Source of the DNA: Diadema antillarum | Lineage: Eukaryota | DNA: 64,000 bases | Reading direction: 5' to 3' | Assembly (NCBI RefSeq): GCF_040938485.1 | Contig: NW_027271231.1 | Coordinates: 1,488,001 to 1,552,000, forward strand | Part shown: positions 52,267-60,018 of the stretch, one piece after another | Layout of the letters: each line of letters begins with the position of its first letter | Position numbering within the stretch: the first letter of the stretch is position 1 | Program-made: the position numbers and the translations under genes | Notes under the pieces: model-generated | Seen by the model: the letters and a program-made list of their open reading frames with translations, nothing else | Told to the model about the DNA's origin: nothing | Database searches by the model: none

Positions 52267-55200
52267 ATGAAAAGTATGTATGATCAGTTCTCATTTTCTA
52301 AGGCGTTAAAATGTTCGAGAGAGAATTGTTGACTCTATCTCTTCTTTTTTTTTTCGTGTCTGATAGAGAATTAGAGAGCCATGCAGAGAGATAGAGGGTG
52401 AATGAGCAATTTACAGTGGTGCCATTTTCTTTAAATTGTCATCATTTTCTGTGTAAGAATGTTATTAATCATCCACGTTTGTATTGCATCGCATGCAGGA
52501 ACTGTAATGCTACGACGCAGAAATATTCCTTCAGTGCTCAGCTGCAATCTAATGATTATATGCGTCCCAGGGCAACATACTCTTTCTTAACTCAGGTGTA
52601 CAAGACGGTACAAAATGGTGCAAAGTATAATGGGGCAAGACAAAAGGAAGTACAATTCAAATCACCAATTATATTCAGATAAATCCAAGATATTTCAGAA
52701 ATTGAACAAAGCTCTCTGTTGGTAATGATGAAAATGTGTCCAAAAATGCTTAAATTGATGGGTATTGAAATTGGTTGTTTGTTAATTTGTTTGCATTTTT
52801 TTTTTGCTTGATCCAAAGTCCTGTATATTTGGATAATTAGTCTTAATTGTTTTGCAAATGATATGAGCAGGATAATTTGAACGATGACCACATGATTCTC
52901 AATAATATTTTCTGAGGGTCCCATATCGCACAAGCTTATGCTTTTTTAGTTGGACCCTCTGTTTCCATTCCCATCCTTTTATTTTGATTTGCACTATGCA
53001 TAATGTATATATTTAAAAGAAATACAATTATGTTTTCTTCATTTTGTTACTCATTATCACATGTATTCTGTTAATTTACATTTATGCGATTATTACATTT
53101 ATGTTCTACTTATATATTACTGTATATTATTTTCTCTGTTCAAGTTCAAGTTCAAGTTCGAATTTATTCGTTTTTCCACAATAAAATCATACAGACATAA
53201 ATCTCACTTTCTTGAGTGACAGAAACAATGTATGTAAATTCGTACAAAGAAACCAACAATAATGAGAAAAACTAATAGTATCAATACATTGCAATTGTTG
53301 CAGAAGTAACGAAAATGAAAGAATTGTCAATATGCACTGTGTGAAAAAACGGAGGGACCTACTAAAAAGACAATGCTTGTAGAGTGTGGGCCCCTCTTGT
53401 ATTAAAAACTCGATGCAAAATTTGACTAAATATAGCAACAAAGCAGCACGAAAAGTTTGGCATAAAAAGTTTAGCAGCCCACTAAGAGACAGACGGACAA
53501 ACAGTTACACACAAAACAATAACAAACGAAATAATGAGCATGAGACAAGACTGGGACAGCAACAAGACTACTTATAGGGAAGAAAACTGACTTGACGACA
53601 CGACAGGAAACAAGACTACAGCGCGACGAAGAGGTAACAAAATAGACAGGAGTAAGCAACAGAGACAACGATCCTCGGAGGTTAGAGGAAGAAAGAGAAG
53701 AAGAAGAAAAGAAGAATATACAACAAACCCTTCAACTGCGAGGTATAAGTTAAAGAAGATCTTATCATAATCAAAGCTAAGGCAAAAGTAACAATAATGA
53801 AAAAACGGCAATAAAGATTTTGCGGACGGGAAACAAAATAAGCCTATGAACTAATCTGATTCAGGGGGTCGTCATTATAGGATTGCAAAAGAAAAAACTT
53901 CAATCTCCTTTTGAAGGAGTATATAGAGGGAGCAGAATTTATATCGTGGTTCAGGGAATTCCAATAATTAGGTCCAGTGTAAATAAGTGTATTCTTTGCT
54001 AGAATCGTTCGAAGAAGTGGTAAATGAAACTCGTTAGAGCGTCGGGTGGGGTAATTATGGAATGATCGATTTTTTTTGGAACATAGAACCAAAGATAGGT
54101 GGCAGTAAACTGTTATCATACATATACATAAATTGGCCTAAGTTGTATAAAAATAATTCGTTCATTTTTAGTAGCTTATTACAGTTAAACAATACATTTG
54201 TATGTGAACGAGTGGGAGAAATGGAAATGATACGGAGGGCTTTTTTTTTTTTGCAATAATAACACTCTATTCAGCAGCGTCTGATGTGTATTGCCCCAAG
54301 CTAAACTTCCATAATGAAGGTAAAGGAGTATCAAAGAGGAGTATAACACAAGTAATGTCTTTTCAGGAATATAAAATTTTAGTCTGTTCATAACACCTAT
54401 ATTTCGAGAGATGATTTTGCAAATATGATCAATATGTATTTTCCAAGAAAGTTTATTATCTACAAAAAACCAAGAAATTTGAAATATGACACACTTTCTA
54501 AATTACAATCATCCAGAACTATTTCTGAATTCAAAGAATCAACAGTATTGCTGAAAAGCATATATTTTGTTTTTTGAACATTCAATGACAACTTGTTAGC
54601 TCTGACCCAGTTGGTCACTTTTTTCAATTCTGTATTAGCTTGTTGAACAAGAACAACGATATCGTTATGGGCAAGAAAAACACTGGTGTCATCAGCATAG
54701 TGTATAAAGGAAAGTACCTCTGAAACAGAGGAAAAATCATTGATATATATTATGAATAGCAGCGGCCCTAAAAGACTTCCCTGTGGAACACCACACTTTA
54801 CATCTCTTATAACTGAATTATTATCTTTAATTGAAACAAACTGTTTTCTGTCAGCTAAATAAGTCTTGAACCACTCCAAGGCCTTCCCACGTATTCCGTA
54901 GTGCGATAACTTGTGGAGTAAAATGTTGTGATTAATTGTATCGAAGGCCTTGGAGAAGTCCAAGAATATACTAATTAAATGAGAATGATTGTCAGTTGCA
55001 TTAACGACTTTATCAATAAAATGAAGAACTGCATGGATGGTACTATGTTTTTCTCGGAAACCAAACTGGGAATTTGTGAATATTTTGTGCACATTTAAAA
55101 ATTTGGTAATTCTGGTGTATATTATTTTTTCTAAAACTTTCGATAATGAACATAATAAAGAGATTGGACGATAATTACTGACATCCAGATTATTGCCTTT

Positions 55201-58200: not shown

Positions 58201-60018
58201 TTGTAGCAGTATGTATAGTGATCACAATAGGGTTTTTTTTTCAATTCAAGTTGTGCTTTATGTCCATGCATCAAAGGTAATACAAATACAAAGTATACAT
58301 TAAATAAACCACATTACTTGTTATAACAAATGCAAATCACAAAGTTTGATACAAAATTATTGTATGAACGCATGAATAGAAACAATGCATACTTTGTCAA
58401 GTAATTTAAGTAGATGTTGCAATAAAGTAGGAGGCACATCACTTCGAGGACTTTTAAAAGAAAACGCAGAGTATTGGTAAAAACTATAGTAGACAGTTAG
58501 AGTTGCAGTTAGGGTGTTATTTCACTCCCTGTTAGCCTTGGCCTATAAAATGGCATCGTCAGACATATTATAATGGGAAAGGTATGATTTTTTTTAATCT
58601 GAACTTTCAAATTTTACTTTTCATATTTAAGGTCCTCTTATGTTGAATCTCTTCCCTTAGTTGTTTGATTTAACACTATTTATCGAAGTCAAATATTAAT
58701 CATAGTGCAAAATTGCACTTCAAAGCAAATCATGACAAATTGTGATGATATTTTGACGCCCATCAGAGTATCGGTTTTCATAGGTTTTGAGCAGATAACT
58801 ATAAGGACCAATTTTCAACTACGTATAGCGAATGCCGCCTCAAGTAGATGGCAGGATGTTCATTCAATTTTCACGGCAATCTTTTGAATAGTCAATATCT
58901 ATATGCAATCTATCAAAATAATTGTCAATATCTTTCTAATCCACGCAATGCATTCATTGTGTTAACAGCAATCAAAGTCGAAATTCTCAGCCAGGACCAA
59001 AATCGGATCAATGGGACCGTTTCAGAGGTTTTCAAGAATTCATCGCGCTCACTGCCCCAAGTCAAACGGGGCTCTGATCTGACTTTGGCCAAATCCACTC
59101 ATGTCTGTGGGCAAGTAGACGTGCAAGTTGGATCTACGTATTTCATCTCTGGAAAGGGTGAGTTAACCCGTTCCATACTGAATTCTGAAATACCCATAGA
59201 CTTGATATGCATGCAGGCTACCACGTTCCCATAAGGAACGGGTTAATACTCACATTCATGTATTTAAAATGAAATATCCATAACGGTGGAGTTATCTTCG
59301 GATGCCATGGACGGGTATACGAACGTCGACGAGATCGATAACCACAAGTCATACAGCTCGCGAGTCATACAGCCAATGAGTTCGACACTAGACCGACGTA
59401 TTAAGCCCCGTTTTGTATCTACTGAACTCGTGGGCTGTGTTTACCTAGTGTCGGTCTCGTGGGATGACCCCCGATAGACAACCATAATATAACCAATGTA
59501 TATATGATTCCAACGGAGCAGTGGGTCTTTTATGCTAAAATCAATACACGATAATGTCATTTATGAAAAAAAAGTATCCACCGAGTGTCAACTCCAAGGT
59601 CCGAGTTTGAGTAAAAAAAACAAAAAACAAAAAACAATTTTTTTTTAGATGGTGGGGGGGGGGGTAGAGGCTCATGCCGTCTTACTTTATGGTATCAGCT
59701 TGTAACAAATCGTTAACTGGTCGGGGGATATTAGTGTCGTATGCTTGATACTGTTATTCTCGTTTCCTTTGTCATTTCACTGCGGACGATACAGCTGAAC
59801 ACGGGAGACCCTTAGTACACAAGTGCGCATCCGTGATCGGCGAATATGGCGACGACGGAGTTCCGTATCGTGGGGACCTTGCAATCGACGTCAACCCCGA
59901 CTGTGATTCGCATGGCAGTGATAACAAGCCAATAAAAACTCAAGCCGACGGTTCTGGTCATGTGTTCAACCTCAGCATCCTTCTCCTCACCTGCTCGTTG
60001 ATAGCAACACTCTTCTAA
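52267..60018 (+). CDS. TIMP/NTR-domain protein with signal peptide and GPI-type C-terminal tail (181 aa), 4 coding exons
   Basis: Exons 52267-52273 (caccATGAAAA|gtatgt), 57749-57874, 58969-59157 and 59795-60018 are joined by phase-1 GT-AG introns (546 nt). Signal peptide MKTLRTLLHCTCVIIVLAAVFPGETQA, then C-F-C-P-x8-C13 (TIMP Cys1/Cys3/Cys13 spacing), CMADFAIKVEI, CGQVDVQVGSTYFISG and six mature Cys. It ends DGSGHVFNLSILLLTCSLIATLF*. Confidence 0.8.
53138..56992 (-). mobile_element. CR1/L2-group (Crack-like) LINE: full-length but frameshifted APE-RT ORF2 plus 3'UTR, in TIMP-like intron 1
   Basis: ORF2 runs from ATG 56992 (MADLSNAPFHSVPNDD) through APE motifs (HFNIRSL, IGLSETW, GGGVAFYV, IIYRPP, LLGDYNID, SATLIDNLF, DHFP) and RT motifs (YRPISLL, QFGFR, LDFSKAFDT, GVPQGSLLGPLLF, YADDT) to the stop at 53844. 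AATAAA (53168-53163) is followed by a (TTGAAC)n tail ending at 53138. About 8 frameshifts. Confidence 0.9.
59167..59242. mobile_element. 76-bp piggyBac-type mini element
   Basis: TTAA|CCCGTTCC...GGAACGGG|TTAA. Confidence 0.6.

Follow-up and report, generated by a model that had tools for sequence, protein, structure and literature searches.

TIMPs are textbook secreted inhibitors, and their reactive ridge is formed by two disulfides, Cys1-Cys70 and Cys3-Cys99, on an OB-fold wedge. At the cell surface, RECK is a natural GPI-anchored inhibitor of metalloproteinases. Isolated N-domains of TIMPs stay inhibitory (PMC3679795), an engineered TIMP-1-GPI inhibits effectively at the surface (PMC9409782), and in nematodes and cnidarians TIMPs with a single domain are recognised as belonging to the family (PMC9409782, PMC3679795). 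In echinoderms, TIMPs are recognised through the NTR domain, and residue 2 of their C-x-C varies (PMC8467561, PMC4807446, PMC10755359); echinoderm TIMP-like proteins devoid of HPQ are also known (PMC8467561). Three papers on echinoderm TIMPs mention no membrane-anchored member (PMC8467561, PMC4807446, PMC10755359), and according to a 2021 review the functions of the MMPs and TIMPs of this phylum were "not studied at all" (PMC8467561).

The window analysed here, i.e., the whole stretch of 64,000 nucleotides from Diadema antillarum (contig NW_027271231.1, positions 1,488,001 to 1,552,000), contains a four-exon gene on the plus strand that encodes a product of 181 residues (CDS of 546 nt). All the sequence claims of a preliminary description of this locus were reproduced. 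Its gene model, with three junctions, was right; the exons were recovered and the spliced product is identical to a public protein, P0001 (NCBI/UniRef, "uncharacterized protein [Diadema antillarum]"). The features of the gene are the following:

52267-52273, + strand: coding part of exon 1, ATG plus 4 nt, with A at -3; donor GTATGT
52274-57748, + strand: intron 1, 5.5 kb, phase 1
57749-57874, + strand: exon 2, in two parts (remainder of the signal peptide and mature N-terminus)
57749-57822, + strand: first part of exon 2, remainder of the predicted signal peptide, residues 3-27, h-region CTCVIIVLAAVF, cleavage context ETQA/C
57823-57874, + strand: second part of exon 2, predicted mature start, Cys1-Phe2-Cys3 ... 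Cys13-Met-Ala-Asp-Phe, which aligns to TIMP-2 residues 1-17
58969-59157, + strand: exon 3, core of the NTR/TIMP-like domain, with Cys64 in S-T-H-V-C-G, and Y-F-I-S-G-K
59010-59018, + strand: sequon NGT, in exon 3
59037-59045, + strand: sequon NSS, in exon 3
59795-60018, + strand: exon 4, domain end, linker, omega candidates, tail and stop
59795-59904, + strand: first part of exon 4, domain end with Cys91, RGD and Cys117
59869-59877, + strand: RGD, in exon 4
59902-59904, + strand: codon of Cys117
59905-59943, + strand: polar linker, residues 145-157, D-S-H-G-S-D-N-K-P-I-K-T-Q
59944-59952, + strand: candidate GPI omega sites Ala158, Asp159 and Gly160, each with a small residue at omega+2
59953-60018, + strand: predicted C-terminal propeptide (spacer and hydrophobic tail) and stop, residues 161-181; TAA at 60016-60018

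All three introns are of the GT...AG type and lie in phase 1. Exon 2 is devoid of a start of its own, as an in-frame TAA is located 39 nt upstream with no ATG between, and therefore depends on the 7-nt start exon. No strong donor-like site was found in the interior of exon 4. Intron 1 harbours a decayed non-LTR retrotransposon on the minus strand, with an ORF at 54460-55284 (-) that matches Pfam RVT_1 (E 4.2e-40); the segment of this intron from about 53140 to 57291 has no collinear counterpart in the intron of Diadema setosum.

The orthologue of D. setosum, P0004, is also a protein of 181 residues, 94% identical, and its gene is found in the matching place, between PLK4 and a PIH1_CS gene. 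The exons measure 7, 126, 189 and 224 nt in both species, and the start exon of D. setosum ends in the same donor (ATGAGAA/GTATGT). Between the two species the exons are 92-97% identical and show no indels, and the introns are 61-77% identical with many indels. Identity is 96.8% for exon 2, versus 69-77% for the introns that flank it, 96.8% for exon 3, again indel-free, and 93.8% for the domain end in exon 4; linker and tail reach 90.7%, also indel-free, and directly past the stop the value is 84%, with indels. For this pair dN/dS is 0.19 over the whole coding sequence and 0.11 within the domain; the gene is under purifying selection. Evolution of the tail is faster than that of the domain, with a ratio of 0.43 from 6 non-synonymous changes and 4 synonymous ones. 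A first coding exon of just 7 nt placed 5.5 kb upstream, and the absence of any transcript-derived protein or fragment among the protein collections searched, could indicate a prediction artefact or a silent gene, i.e., exons that are not co-transcribed or a locus that is not expressed. This is scarcely credible in view of the four exons, phases, start exon and donor shared with D. setosum, of an exon conservation sharply above that of the introns, and of a low dN/dS with the frame intact in both species. The locus is almost certainly a real, conserved four-exon gene. No relatives beyond the genus Diadema were found in the protein collections searched, and therefore all the conservation arguments rest on one species pair, with a dS of 0.145.

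The domain had been expected to score as TIMP/NTR, and this held for the second of these families. The protein exceeds the Pfam gathering cut-off of NTR (PF01759, 21.9 bits), with 27.7 bits for P0001 and 28.9 bits for P0004 and for residues 28-150 alone (E 1e-6 to 2.5e-6); the precomputed annotation of P0001 is PF01759 as well, and exon 3 by itself reaches an E of 0.003. The score for TIMP (PF00965) remained below its cut-off of 23.1 bits, with 16.8 bits in D. antillarum and 19.7 bits in D. setosum. This sub-threshold match begins with the N-terminal Cys (profile position 1-3) and covers the N-domain half of the profile only. Also, the HPQ motif of TIMPs is absent, with Ala-Asp-Glu instead of His-Pro-Gln at mature residues 7-9.

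TIMP-2 is the best of three weak PDB sequence matches (E 0.1) and the sole TIMP/NTR-type entry among them. In the HMMER alignment C1, C3, C13, C64 (TIMP-2 C72) and C91 (TIMP-2 C101) are in register, and the motifs C-x-A-D, S-x-x-V-C-G and Y-[FL]-I-[SA]-G-K-A-E are paired with those of TIMP-2. The sixth cysteine, C117, is located beyond the stretch aligned to TIMP-2, and fits a TIMP N-domain (reference positions 1, 3, 13, 70-72, 99-101 and 124-126) by spacing only. A further cysteine, Cys147, sits within the hydrophobic tail; therefore the count of exactly six mature cysteines given in the preliminary description (positions 1, 3, 13, 64, 91 and 117) holds if the tail is removed and fails otherwise. 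The cleavage site of the signal peptide, placed by the -3/-1 rule, falls in the context FPGETQA/CFC (Thr at -3, Ala at -1) after an h-region at residues 10-21, and is identical in both species. In agreement with what had been claimed, cleavage at this site would expose Cys1-Phe-Cys3...Cys13, leaving C-x-C at the predicted mature N-terminus and Cys1 with a free amino group. The reported lack of a TIMP C-domain was likewise borne out, as the frame ends 37 residues after Cys117 and no cysteine-rich ORF was found between the stop codon and the end of the window; the N-glycosylation sequons NGT and NSS are indeed present in exon 3. The presence of a putative TIMP-type NTR domain directly behind the signal peptide is supported, and an NTR/TIMP-like fold is very probable.

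The two AF2 models obtained are of low confidence (pLDDT 43.9 and 33.0). When a low-confidence AF2 model was used with Foldseek, chains of the NTR fold came first; the top four matches were the C345C domains of C3 and C5, the NTR domain of PCOLCE and TIMP-2 (E 0.05-0.15), the last one with 27% identity over 86 columns. A wide search with VIA-align, again with a weak model, returned C345C or netrin-like domains in seven of the nine top matches (Z 5.3-6.1), together with AceES-2 (Z 5.8) and TIMP-1 (Z 4.9); with Z values of at most 6.1, every structural match is below the level that the tool calls meaningful. Ranked on structure only, C345C domains, which are not protease inhibitors, are placed above TIMPs. 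This ranking, the assignment by Pfam to NTR and not to TIMP, the missing HPQ, and the repeated origin of echinoderm TIMP-like proteins without TIMP hallmarks (PMC8467561) would be in line with a surface-tethered NTR binding module, comparable to those of complement C3/C4/C5, PCOLCE, netrins and sFRPs, that is not inhibitory and serves to retain a matrix or signalling ligand on the cell. We consider such a module rather doubtful, given that the domain is at the very N-terminus with C-x-C right after the predicted cleavage, which is the TIMP arrangement and differs from that of NTR modules placed C-terminally in large proteins, and that the closest PDB sequence match is TIMP-2, with which it shares C-x-A-D, V-C-G and Y-x-I-x-G-K-A-E.

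Another relevant aspect is the C-terminal end. A polar linker, small residues and an uncharged tail had been read as a GPI-attachment pattern, and when judged by rule of thumb (a small residue at both omega and omega+2, some 6-10 spacer residues and a propeptide some 20-30 residues long) a candidate GPI-type signal is found in both species. The small-residue run A-D-G-S-G lies between the polar linker and the hydrophobic tail, and the omega candidates Ala158, Asp159 and Gly160 would give propeptides of 23, 22 and 21 residues, respectively. The omega region is invariant between the two Diadema species; the substitutions in D. setosum are S149G and N151D in the linker, and N166K and I169K in the tail. 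In both species the hydrophobic run extends to the very end of the protein, leaving no cytoplasmic residues, and the uncharged run to the C-terminal end comprises 22 residues in D. antillarum and 12, after Lys169, in D. setosum. A run of 22 residues is enough for a membrane-crossing helix, and AF2 draws residues 167-180 as a helix, with low confidence; hence the tail might belong to a type I membrane protein without a cytoplasmic tail, or to a product whose hydrophobic end stays unprocessed and which is secreted or retained. These fates are unlikely, considering that no basic stop-transfer residue is present beyond the run, that small residues occur where the GPI transamidase needs them, and that Lys166 and Lys169 leave only 12 uncharged residues in D. 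setosum, a length that suits a cleaved GPI signal and not a membrane-spanning helix. On the other hand, 12 residues are few even for a GPI signal. GPI anchoring, as opposed to another fate of the tail, seems fairly probable, and the protein may represent a natural, surface-bound form of an inhibitor that is otherwise secreted.

The reading that we favour, by a modest degree of belief, is that the product is a small glycoprotein with one TIMP-type NTR domain, GPI-anchored and able to inhibit metalloproteinases. Signal peptidase would expose Cys1, and in the ER a GPI anchor would take the place of the tail, with Ala158, Asp159 or Gly160 as the attachment site, so that a linker of some 14-16 residues would keep the domain on the cell's outer face. 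The free N-terminal Cys1 would then cap the catalytic zinc of a metzincin of the MMP, ADAM or ADAMTS type, as occurs in TIMPs, and Phe2 would enter the S1' pocket, in which case deep-pocket proteases would be favoured. Proteases would thereby be inhibited, or captured, at the cell surface only. For metalloproteinase inhibition by the Diadema protein we see an evenly balanced case. As a tentative possibility, Diadema would possess a naturally GPI-anchored single-domain TIMP with N-terminal zinc-capping, maybe co-localised with the reported echinoderm GPI-type membrane MMPs. An added layer, in which RGD would engage integrins and couple protease control and adhesion in one surface protein of 130 residues, is much less likely. 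The RGD of the PYRGDL motif pointed out in the preliminary description is certainly there, and is present in both Diadema species; its occurrence is not beyond chance, as RGD arises in 4.0% of composition-preserving shuffles of the ectodomain, and in an AF2 model the segment has a pLDDT below 50. Given this chance level, and a conservation seen in one species pair only, at 94% identity, the coupling to integrins or adhesion remains speculation, and the motif is very unlikely to act as an integrin site. The view that Phe at residue 2 is unusual was weakened, since this residue is variable in echinoderm TIMPs, even within one species (PMC8467561), and the suggested link to tensilin-like stiffeners finds no support here, tensilins being placed in holothurians only (PMC8467561).

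If true, a natural surface-tethered TIMP would mean that a solution built by hand against membrane-type MMPs also arose in evolution. It would offer a compact scaffold, optimised by nature, in which the N-domain stands alone, Phe occupies the S1' position and the linker is short. The large and little-studied MMP/TIMP system of echinoderms would also gain a cell-surface layer. The reach of this proposal is limited for now: the gene is real and encodes a TIMP-related variant known from one genus, whose membrane anchor and inhibitory activity we infer from its sequence.

In comparison with the N-domain of vertebrate TIMPs (TIMP-2; PDB 2tmp, 1br9), the Diadema protein has C-x-C immediately after the signal peptide, Cys13-x-Ala-Asp, V-C-G at the position of Cys64, and Y-[FL]-I-[SA]-G-K-A-E, with five cysteines that align. 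On the other hand, its loops are shorter than those of TIMP-2 (Cys 64/91/117, the first two corresponding to TIMP-2 Cys72 and Cys101), it has no C-domain, carries Phe2 instead of Ser/Thr and ADE in place of HPQ at residues 7-9, and falls below the Pfam TIMP cut-off; vertebrate TIMPs are secreted, whereas this protein ends in a hydrophobic tail. Echinoderm TIMP genes belong to the same phylum, and four exons are their commonest structure (PMC8467561, PMC4807446, PMC10755359); however, their products mostly have 10-12 conserved cysteines and two domains (PMC8467561), in contrast with six cysteines and a membrane-type tail. Tensilins differ in having two residues between the first cysteines and in being confined to holothurians. 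The NTR/C345C modules of complement C3/C4/C5, PCOLCE, netrins and sFRPs (PF01759) resemble the Diadema domain in that it passes their Pfam cut-off and finds in them its best structural matches, with a weak model; nevertheless, these modules form the C-terminal part of large multidomain proteins and lack a free N-terminal Cys, whereas in Diadema the module is the whole protein and starts at its predicted mature N-terminus. An N-terminal inhibitory/NTR domain only is also found in TIMPs of nematodes and cnidarians, i.e., C. elegans, hookworm and Nematostella (PMC9409782, PMC3679795), and AceES-2 (PDB 3nsw) is among the best structural matches to the Diadema model; in the literature examined these proteins are described as secreted, and a C-terminal anchor signal is not reported. 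RECK, in turn, is large and contains Kazal motifs, and is neither of the NTR/TIMP fold nor an N-terminal zinc-capping inhibitor. The end product proposed for Diadema corresponds to the engineered TIMP-1-GPI, a TIMP inhibitory domain held by GPI and aimed at pericellular and membrane-type MMPs (PMC9409782); the latter was constructed by grafting an anchor signal onto full-length human TIMP-1, whereas the candidate signal of Diadema is naturally encoded.

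The gene model offered in the preliminary description was rebuilt from the window, and its product was identical end to end to the public protein P0001 (181 aa). When 1.84 billion representative proteins were scanned by HMMER with exon 4 as the query, the scan recovered P0001, which matches the model from the first to the last residue; in the word-indexed search it carries the label "uncharacterized protein [Diadema antillarum]" in both NCBI and UniRef. The index-free scan also returned two repeat proteins that were regarded as chance matches. The coding parts of the four exons are as follows:

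52267-52273, plus strand, coding part of exon 1, 7 nt with the ATG start
57749-57874, plus strand, exon 2, rebuilt from the window sequence
58969-59157, plus strand, exon 3, rebuilt from the window sequence
59795-60018, plus strand, exon 4, rebuilt from the window sequence

These exons sum to a CDS of 546 nt, encoding 181 residues, and the three introns are all GT...AG and all of phase 1. Exon 2 lacks a usable start, with an in-frame TAA 39 nt upstream and no ATG in between; therefore, the 7-nt start exon located 5.5 kb upstream is required. No transcript-derived protein or fragment of this gene was detected by word-indexed searches in the protein collections covered.

The sole relative found in the word-indexed searches, in which the queries were the full-length protein, residues 28-150 at E values up to 10, and exon 4, was P0004, a 181-residue protein from Diadema setosum that is 94% identical. 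When its gene was mapped in the D. setosum locus L001, the exons were of 7, 126, 189 and 224 nt, the same sizes as in D. antillarum; likewise, the start exon (ATGAGAA/GTATGT), the phases and the position of the stop codon are the same. This gene is flanked by PLK4 upstream, on the opposite strand, and by a PIH1_CS gene downstream, with matching neighbours in D. antillarum; both neighbouring genes are broken up into short exons. PLK4 and the TIMP-like gene are arranged head to head on opposite strands in both species (L001 1-10000), and they may have a common bidirectional promoter region.

Nucleotide identity between D. antillarum and D. setosum, by region
Exons 2 and 3: 96.8%, no indels
Exon 4: 92.4%, no indels
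Introns: 61-77%, many indels
362 nt 3' of the stop codon: 80-84%, indels present

For the whole CDS, dS was 0.145 and dN/dS 0.19 (Nei-Gojobori); by region, dN/dS was 0.11 in both the signal peptide and the domain, and 0.43 in residues 146-181. From the comparison of the two species, we consider that the TIMP-like locus is a functional gene and not an artefact of prediction. Members of the family are known from the genus Diadema only. No relatives outside this genus appeared in the word-indexed searches or in the index-free scan, but this is a weak negative because the latter covered exon 4 only, and more distant orthologues of the domain may have escaped notice. The motifs were also sought in the supplementary TIMP file of PMC4807446, which consists of truncated nucleotide sequences, and were not found there.

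Intron 1 contains a decayed non-LTR retrotransposon (block 53140-57291) that includes the following feature:

54460-55284, minus strand, RT ORF, Pfam RVT_1 at E 4e-40

The adjacent ORFs are disrupted by frameshifts. Nothing collinear with this block occurs in the D. setosum intron, where approx. 7 kb of different sequence is present, and thus intron 1 has been remodelled separately in each species. The window has N stretches at 60381-60519 and 50768-50945; the former begins 362 nt past the stop codon and is therefore probably located in the 3' UTR, and the single AATAAA within 1.5 kb 3' of the stop codon lies just past it, at 60566. Downstream of the gene there are three dinucleotide microsatellites that yield spurious Cys-Val ORFs:

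60672-60697, (GA)13 microsatellite
61529-61565, (TG)18 microsatellite
63561-63651, (TG)46 microsatellite

Elsewhere in the window, 24001-26000 is the only 2-kb block with a G+C content near 0.50, the remainder being 0.31-0.45; it may represent a CpG-rich promoter or a large coding exon. A tblastn search with the model revealed no other TIMP-like gene in the 64 kb. It gave a weak match at 11881-12027 (E 0.01) to the part of the model that includes the RGD, lying in a short tandem peptide repeat (GVTYKGD, two copies, 11860-12060, minus strand) and taken as a chance match rather than a paralogue, and a second weak match at 12591-12656 (E 0.06).

Regarding the identity of the domain, both proteins passed the 21.9-bit cut-off of the Pfam NTR profile (PF01759), D. 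antillarum with 27.7 bits and D. setosum with 28.9, whereas their scores on the TIMP profile (PF00965), 16.8 and 19.7 bits, stayed below its cut-off of 23.1, so that by the curated criterion the protein is not a member of the TIMP family. When the exons were analysed separately, exon 3 gave a sub-threshold NTR match and no other exon matched. Other NTR modules are located at the C-terminus of large proteins; here the domain makes up the entire protein, and the mature N-terminus opens with C-x-C; in TIMPs this layout enables the free amino group of Cys1 to cap the catalytic zinc. The match to the TIMP profile starts at its position 1-3, on Cys1 (precursor Cys28), and that to the NTR profile only near Cys13. 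TIMP-2 was the best of three weak PDB sequence matches (E 0.1) and the sole TIMP/NTR-type entry among them; the alignment pairs C1, C3 and C13, C64 with C72, and C91 with C101, as well as the motifs C-x-A-D, S-x-x-V-C-G and Y-[FL]-I-[SA]-G-K-A-E. In the PDB profile search the leading match, to a de novo repeat protein, was rejected as an artefact of summed low-complexity stretches, none of which was significant singly. On the position of the domain, the start of the TIMP-profile match and the PDB match, its likely place within the NTR superfamily is the TIMP branch. Against this, the Diadema protein has Ala-Asp-Glu at residues 7-9, where the TIMP motif is His-Pro-Gln. Echinoderm TIMPs have been recognised through the NTR domain, and TIMP-like proteins without the hallmarks have originated repeatedly in echinoderms (PMC8467561).

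Built on alignments of just two near-identical sequences, the AlphaFold2 models were poor: that of residues 28-160 reached pLDDT 43.9, and that of the full-length protein 33.0. The better model showed five strands in the order expected for an OB barrel. Its top four Foldseek matches were the C345C modules of C3 and C5, the NTR domain of PCOLCE, and TIMP-2 (E 0.05-0.15), and when 48,161 chains were scanned by structure alone C345C or netrin-like domains occupied seven of the nine top places (Z 5.3-6.1), with TIMP-1 at 4.9 and N-TIMP-3 at 3.7; these scores fall under the level that the tool notes treat as meaningful. These searches agree weakly with an NTR fold and have no bearing on the exposure of the RGD.

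The rebuilt protein carries the predicted cleavage context ETQA/CFC, the sequons NGT and NSS in the domain, the PYRGDL motif, and a C-terminal part composed of polar linker, A-D-G-S-G run and uncharged terminal tail, all as first described. The mature cysteines are 1, 3, 13, 64, 91 and 117, and a seventh, precursor Cys174, lies within the hydrophobic tail; the count of exactly six therefore holds if the tail is removed and fails otherwise. Phe2 is present, but it is less remarkable than was initially thought, since echinoderm TIMPs differ at this middle position of C-x-C, even inside a single species (PMC8467561). Both domain sequons are conserved in the two Diadema species, and a third one (NLS, residue 166), in the presumed propeptide, is absent from D. 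setosum. The RGD is kept in both proteins, but its conservation between sequences that are 94% identical carries little weight, and 4.0% of ectodomain shuffles that preserve composition contain an RGD as well.

The tail was judged in a script by textbook GPI rules. Taken as the omega site, any of Ala158, Asp159 and Gly160 has a small residue at omega+2 and would leave a candidate propeptide of 21-23 residues in which no charged residue follows the hydrophobic run that ends the protein. The omega region does not differ between the two species, and the linker and tail are free of indels, with the stop codon unchanged. In D. setosum, N166K and I169K shorten the uncharged run from 22 to 12 residues. 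A run of 12 residues is too short to cross the bilayer; a cleaved GPI signal can tolerate it, although it is short even for such a signal. The dN/dS of 0.43 in the tail rests on just ten substitutions; the faster change fits a signal that needs general properties only, and weak constraint would fit too. On these features, we regard GPI anchoring of the protein as moderately likely.

Altogether, what is shown is a conserved gene for a predicted secretory-pathway protein with one TIMP-type NTR domain and a GPI-type C-terminus. The gene is sound and its architecture unusual; the anchor and the activity, which would make the finding striking, are what we infer. Removal of the signal peptide would free Cys1, a GPI anchor would be joined at residues 158-160, the domain would be displayed on the outer leaflet through a linker of about 14-16 residues, and there it would inhibit or capture metzincin proteases of the cell surface, its Phe2 entering the S1' pocket. 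Such a mechanism is plausible and likely partners exist, since isolated TIMP N-domains keep inhibitory activity (PMC3679795), an engineered TIMP-1-GPI was more effective against a membrane-type MMP (PMC9409782), and there are echinoderm MMPs with GPI-like C-termini (PMC8467561). The four exons of the Diadema gene are also the commonest number in echinoderm TIMP genes (PMC10755359). Echinoderm and metazoan surveys, cnidarian and helminth studies, and literature searches outside subscription journals yielded no natural GPI- or membrane-anchored TIMP, which is not proof; the matches on anchored TIMPs were engineered TIMP-1-GPI and unrelated GPI proteins only. RECK is a known natural GPI-anchored MMP inhibitor, and the proposed Diadema protein would resemble it in this respect, although the architecture of RECK is unrelated.
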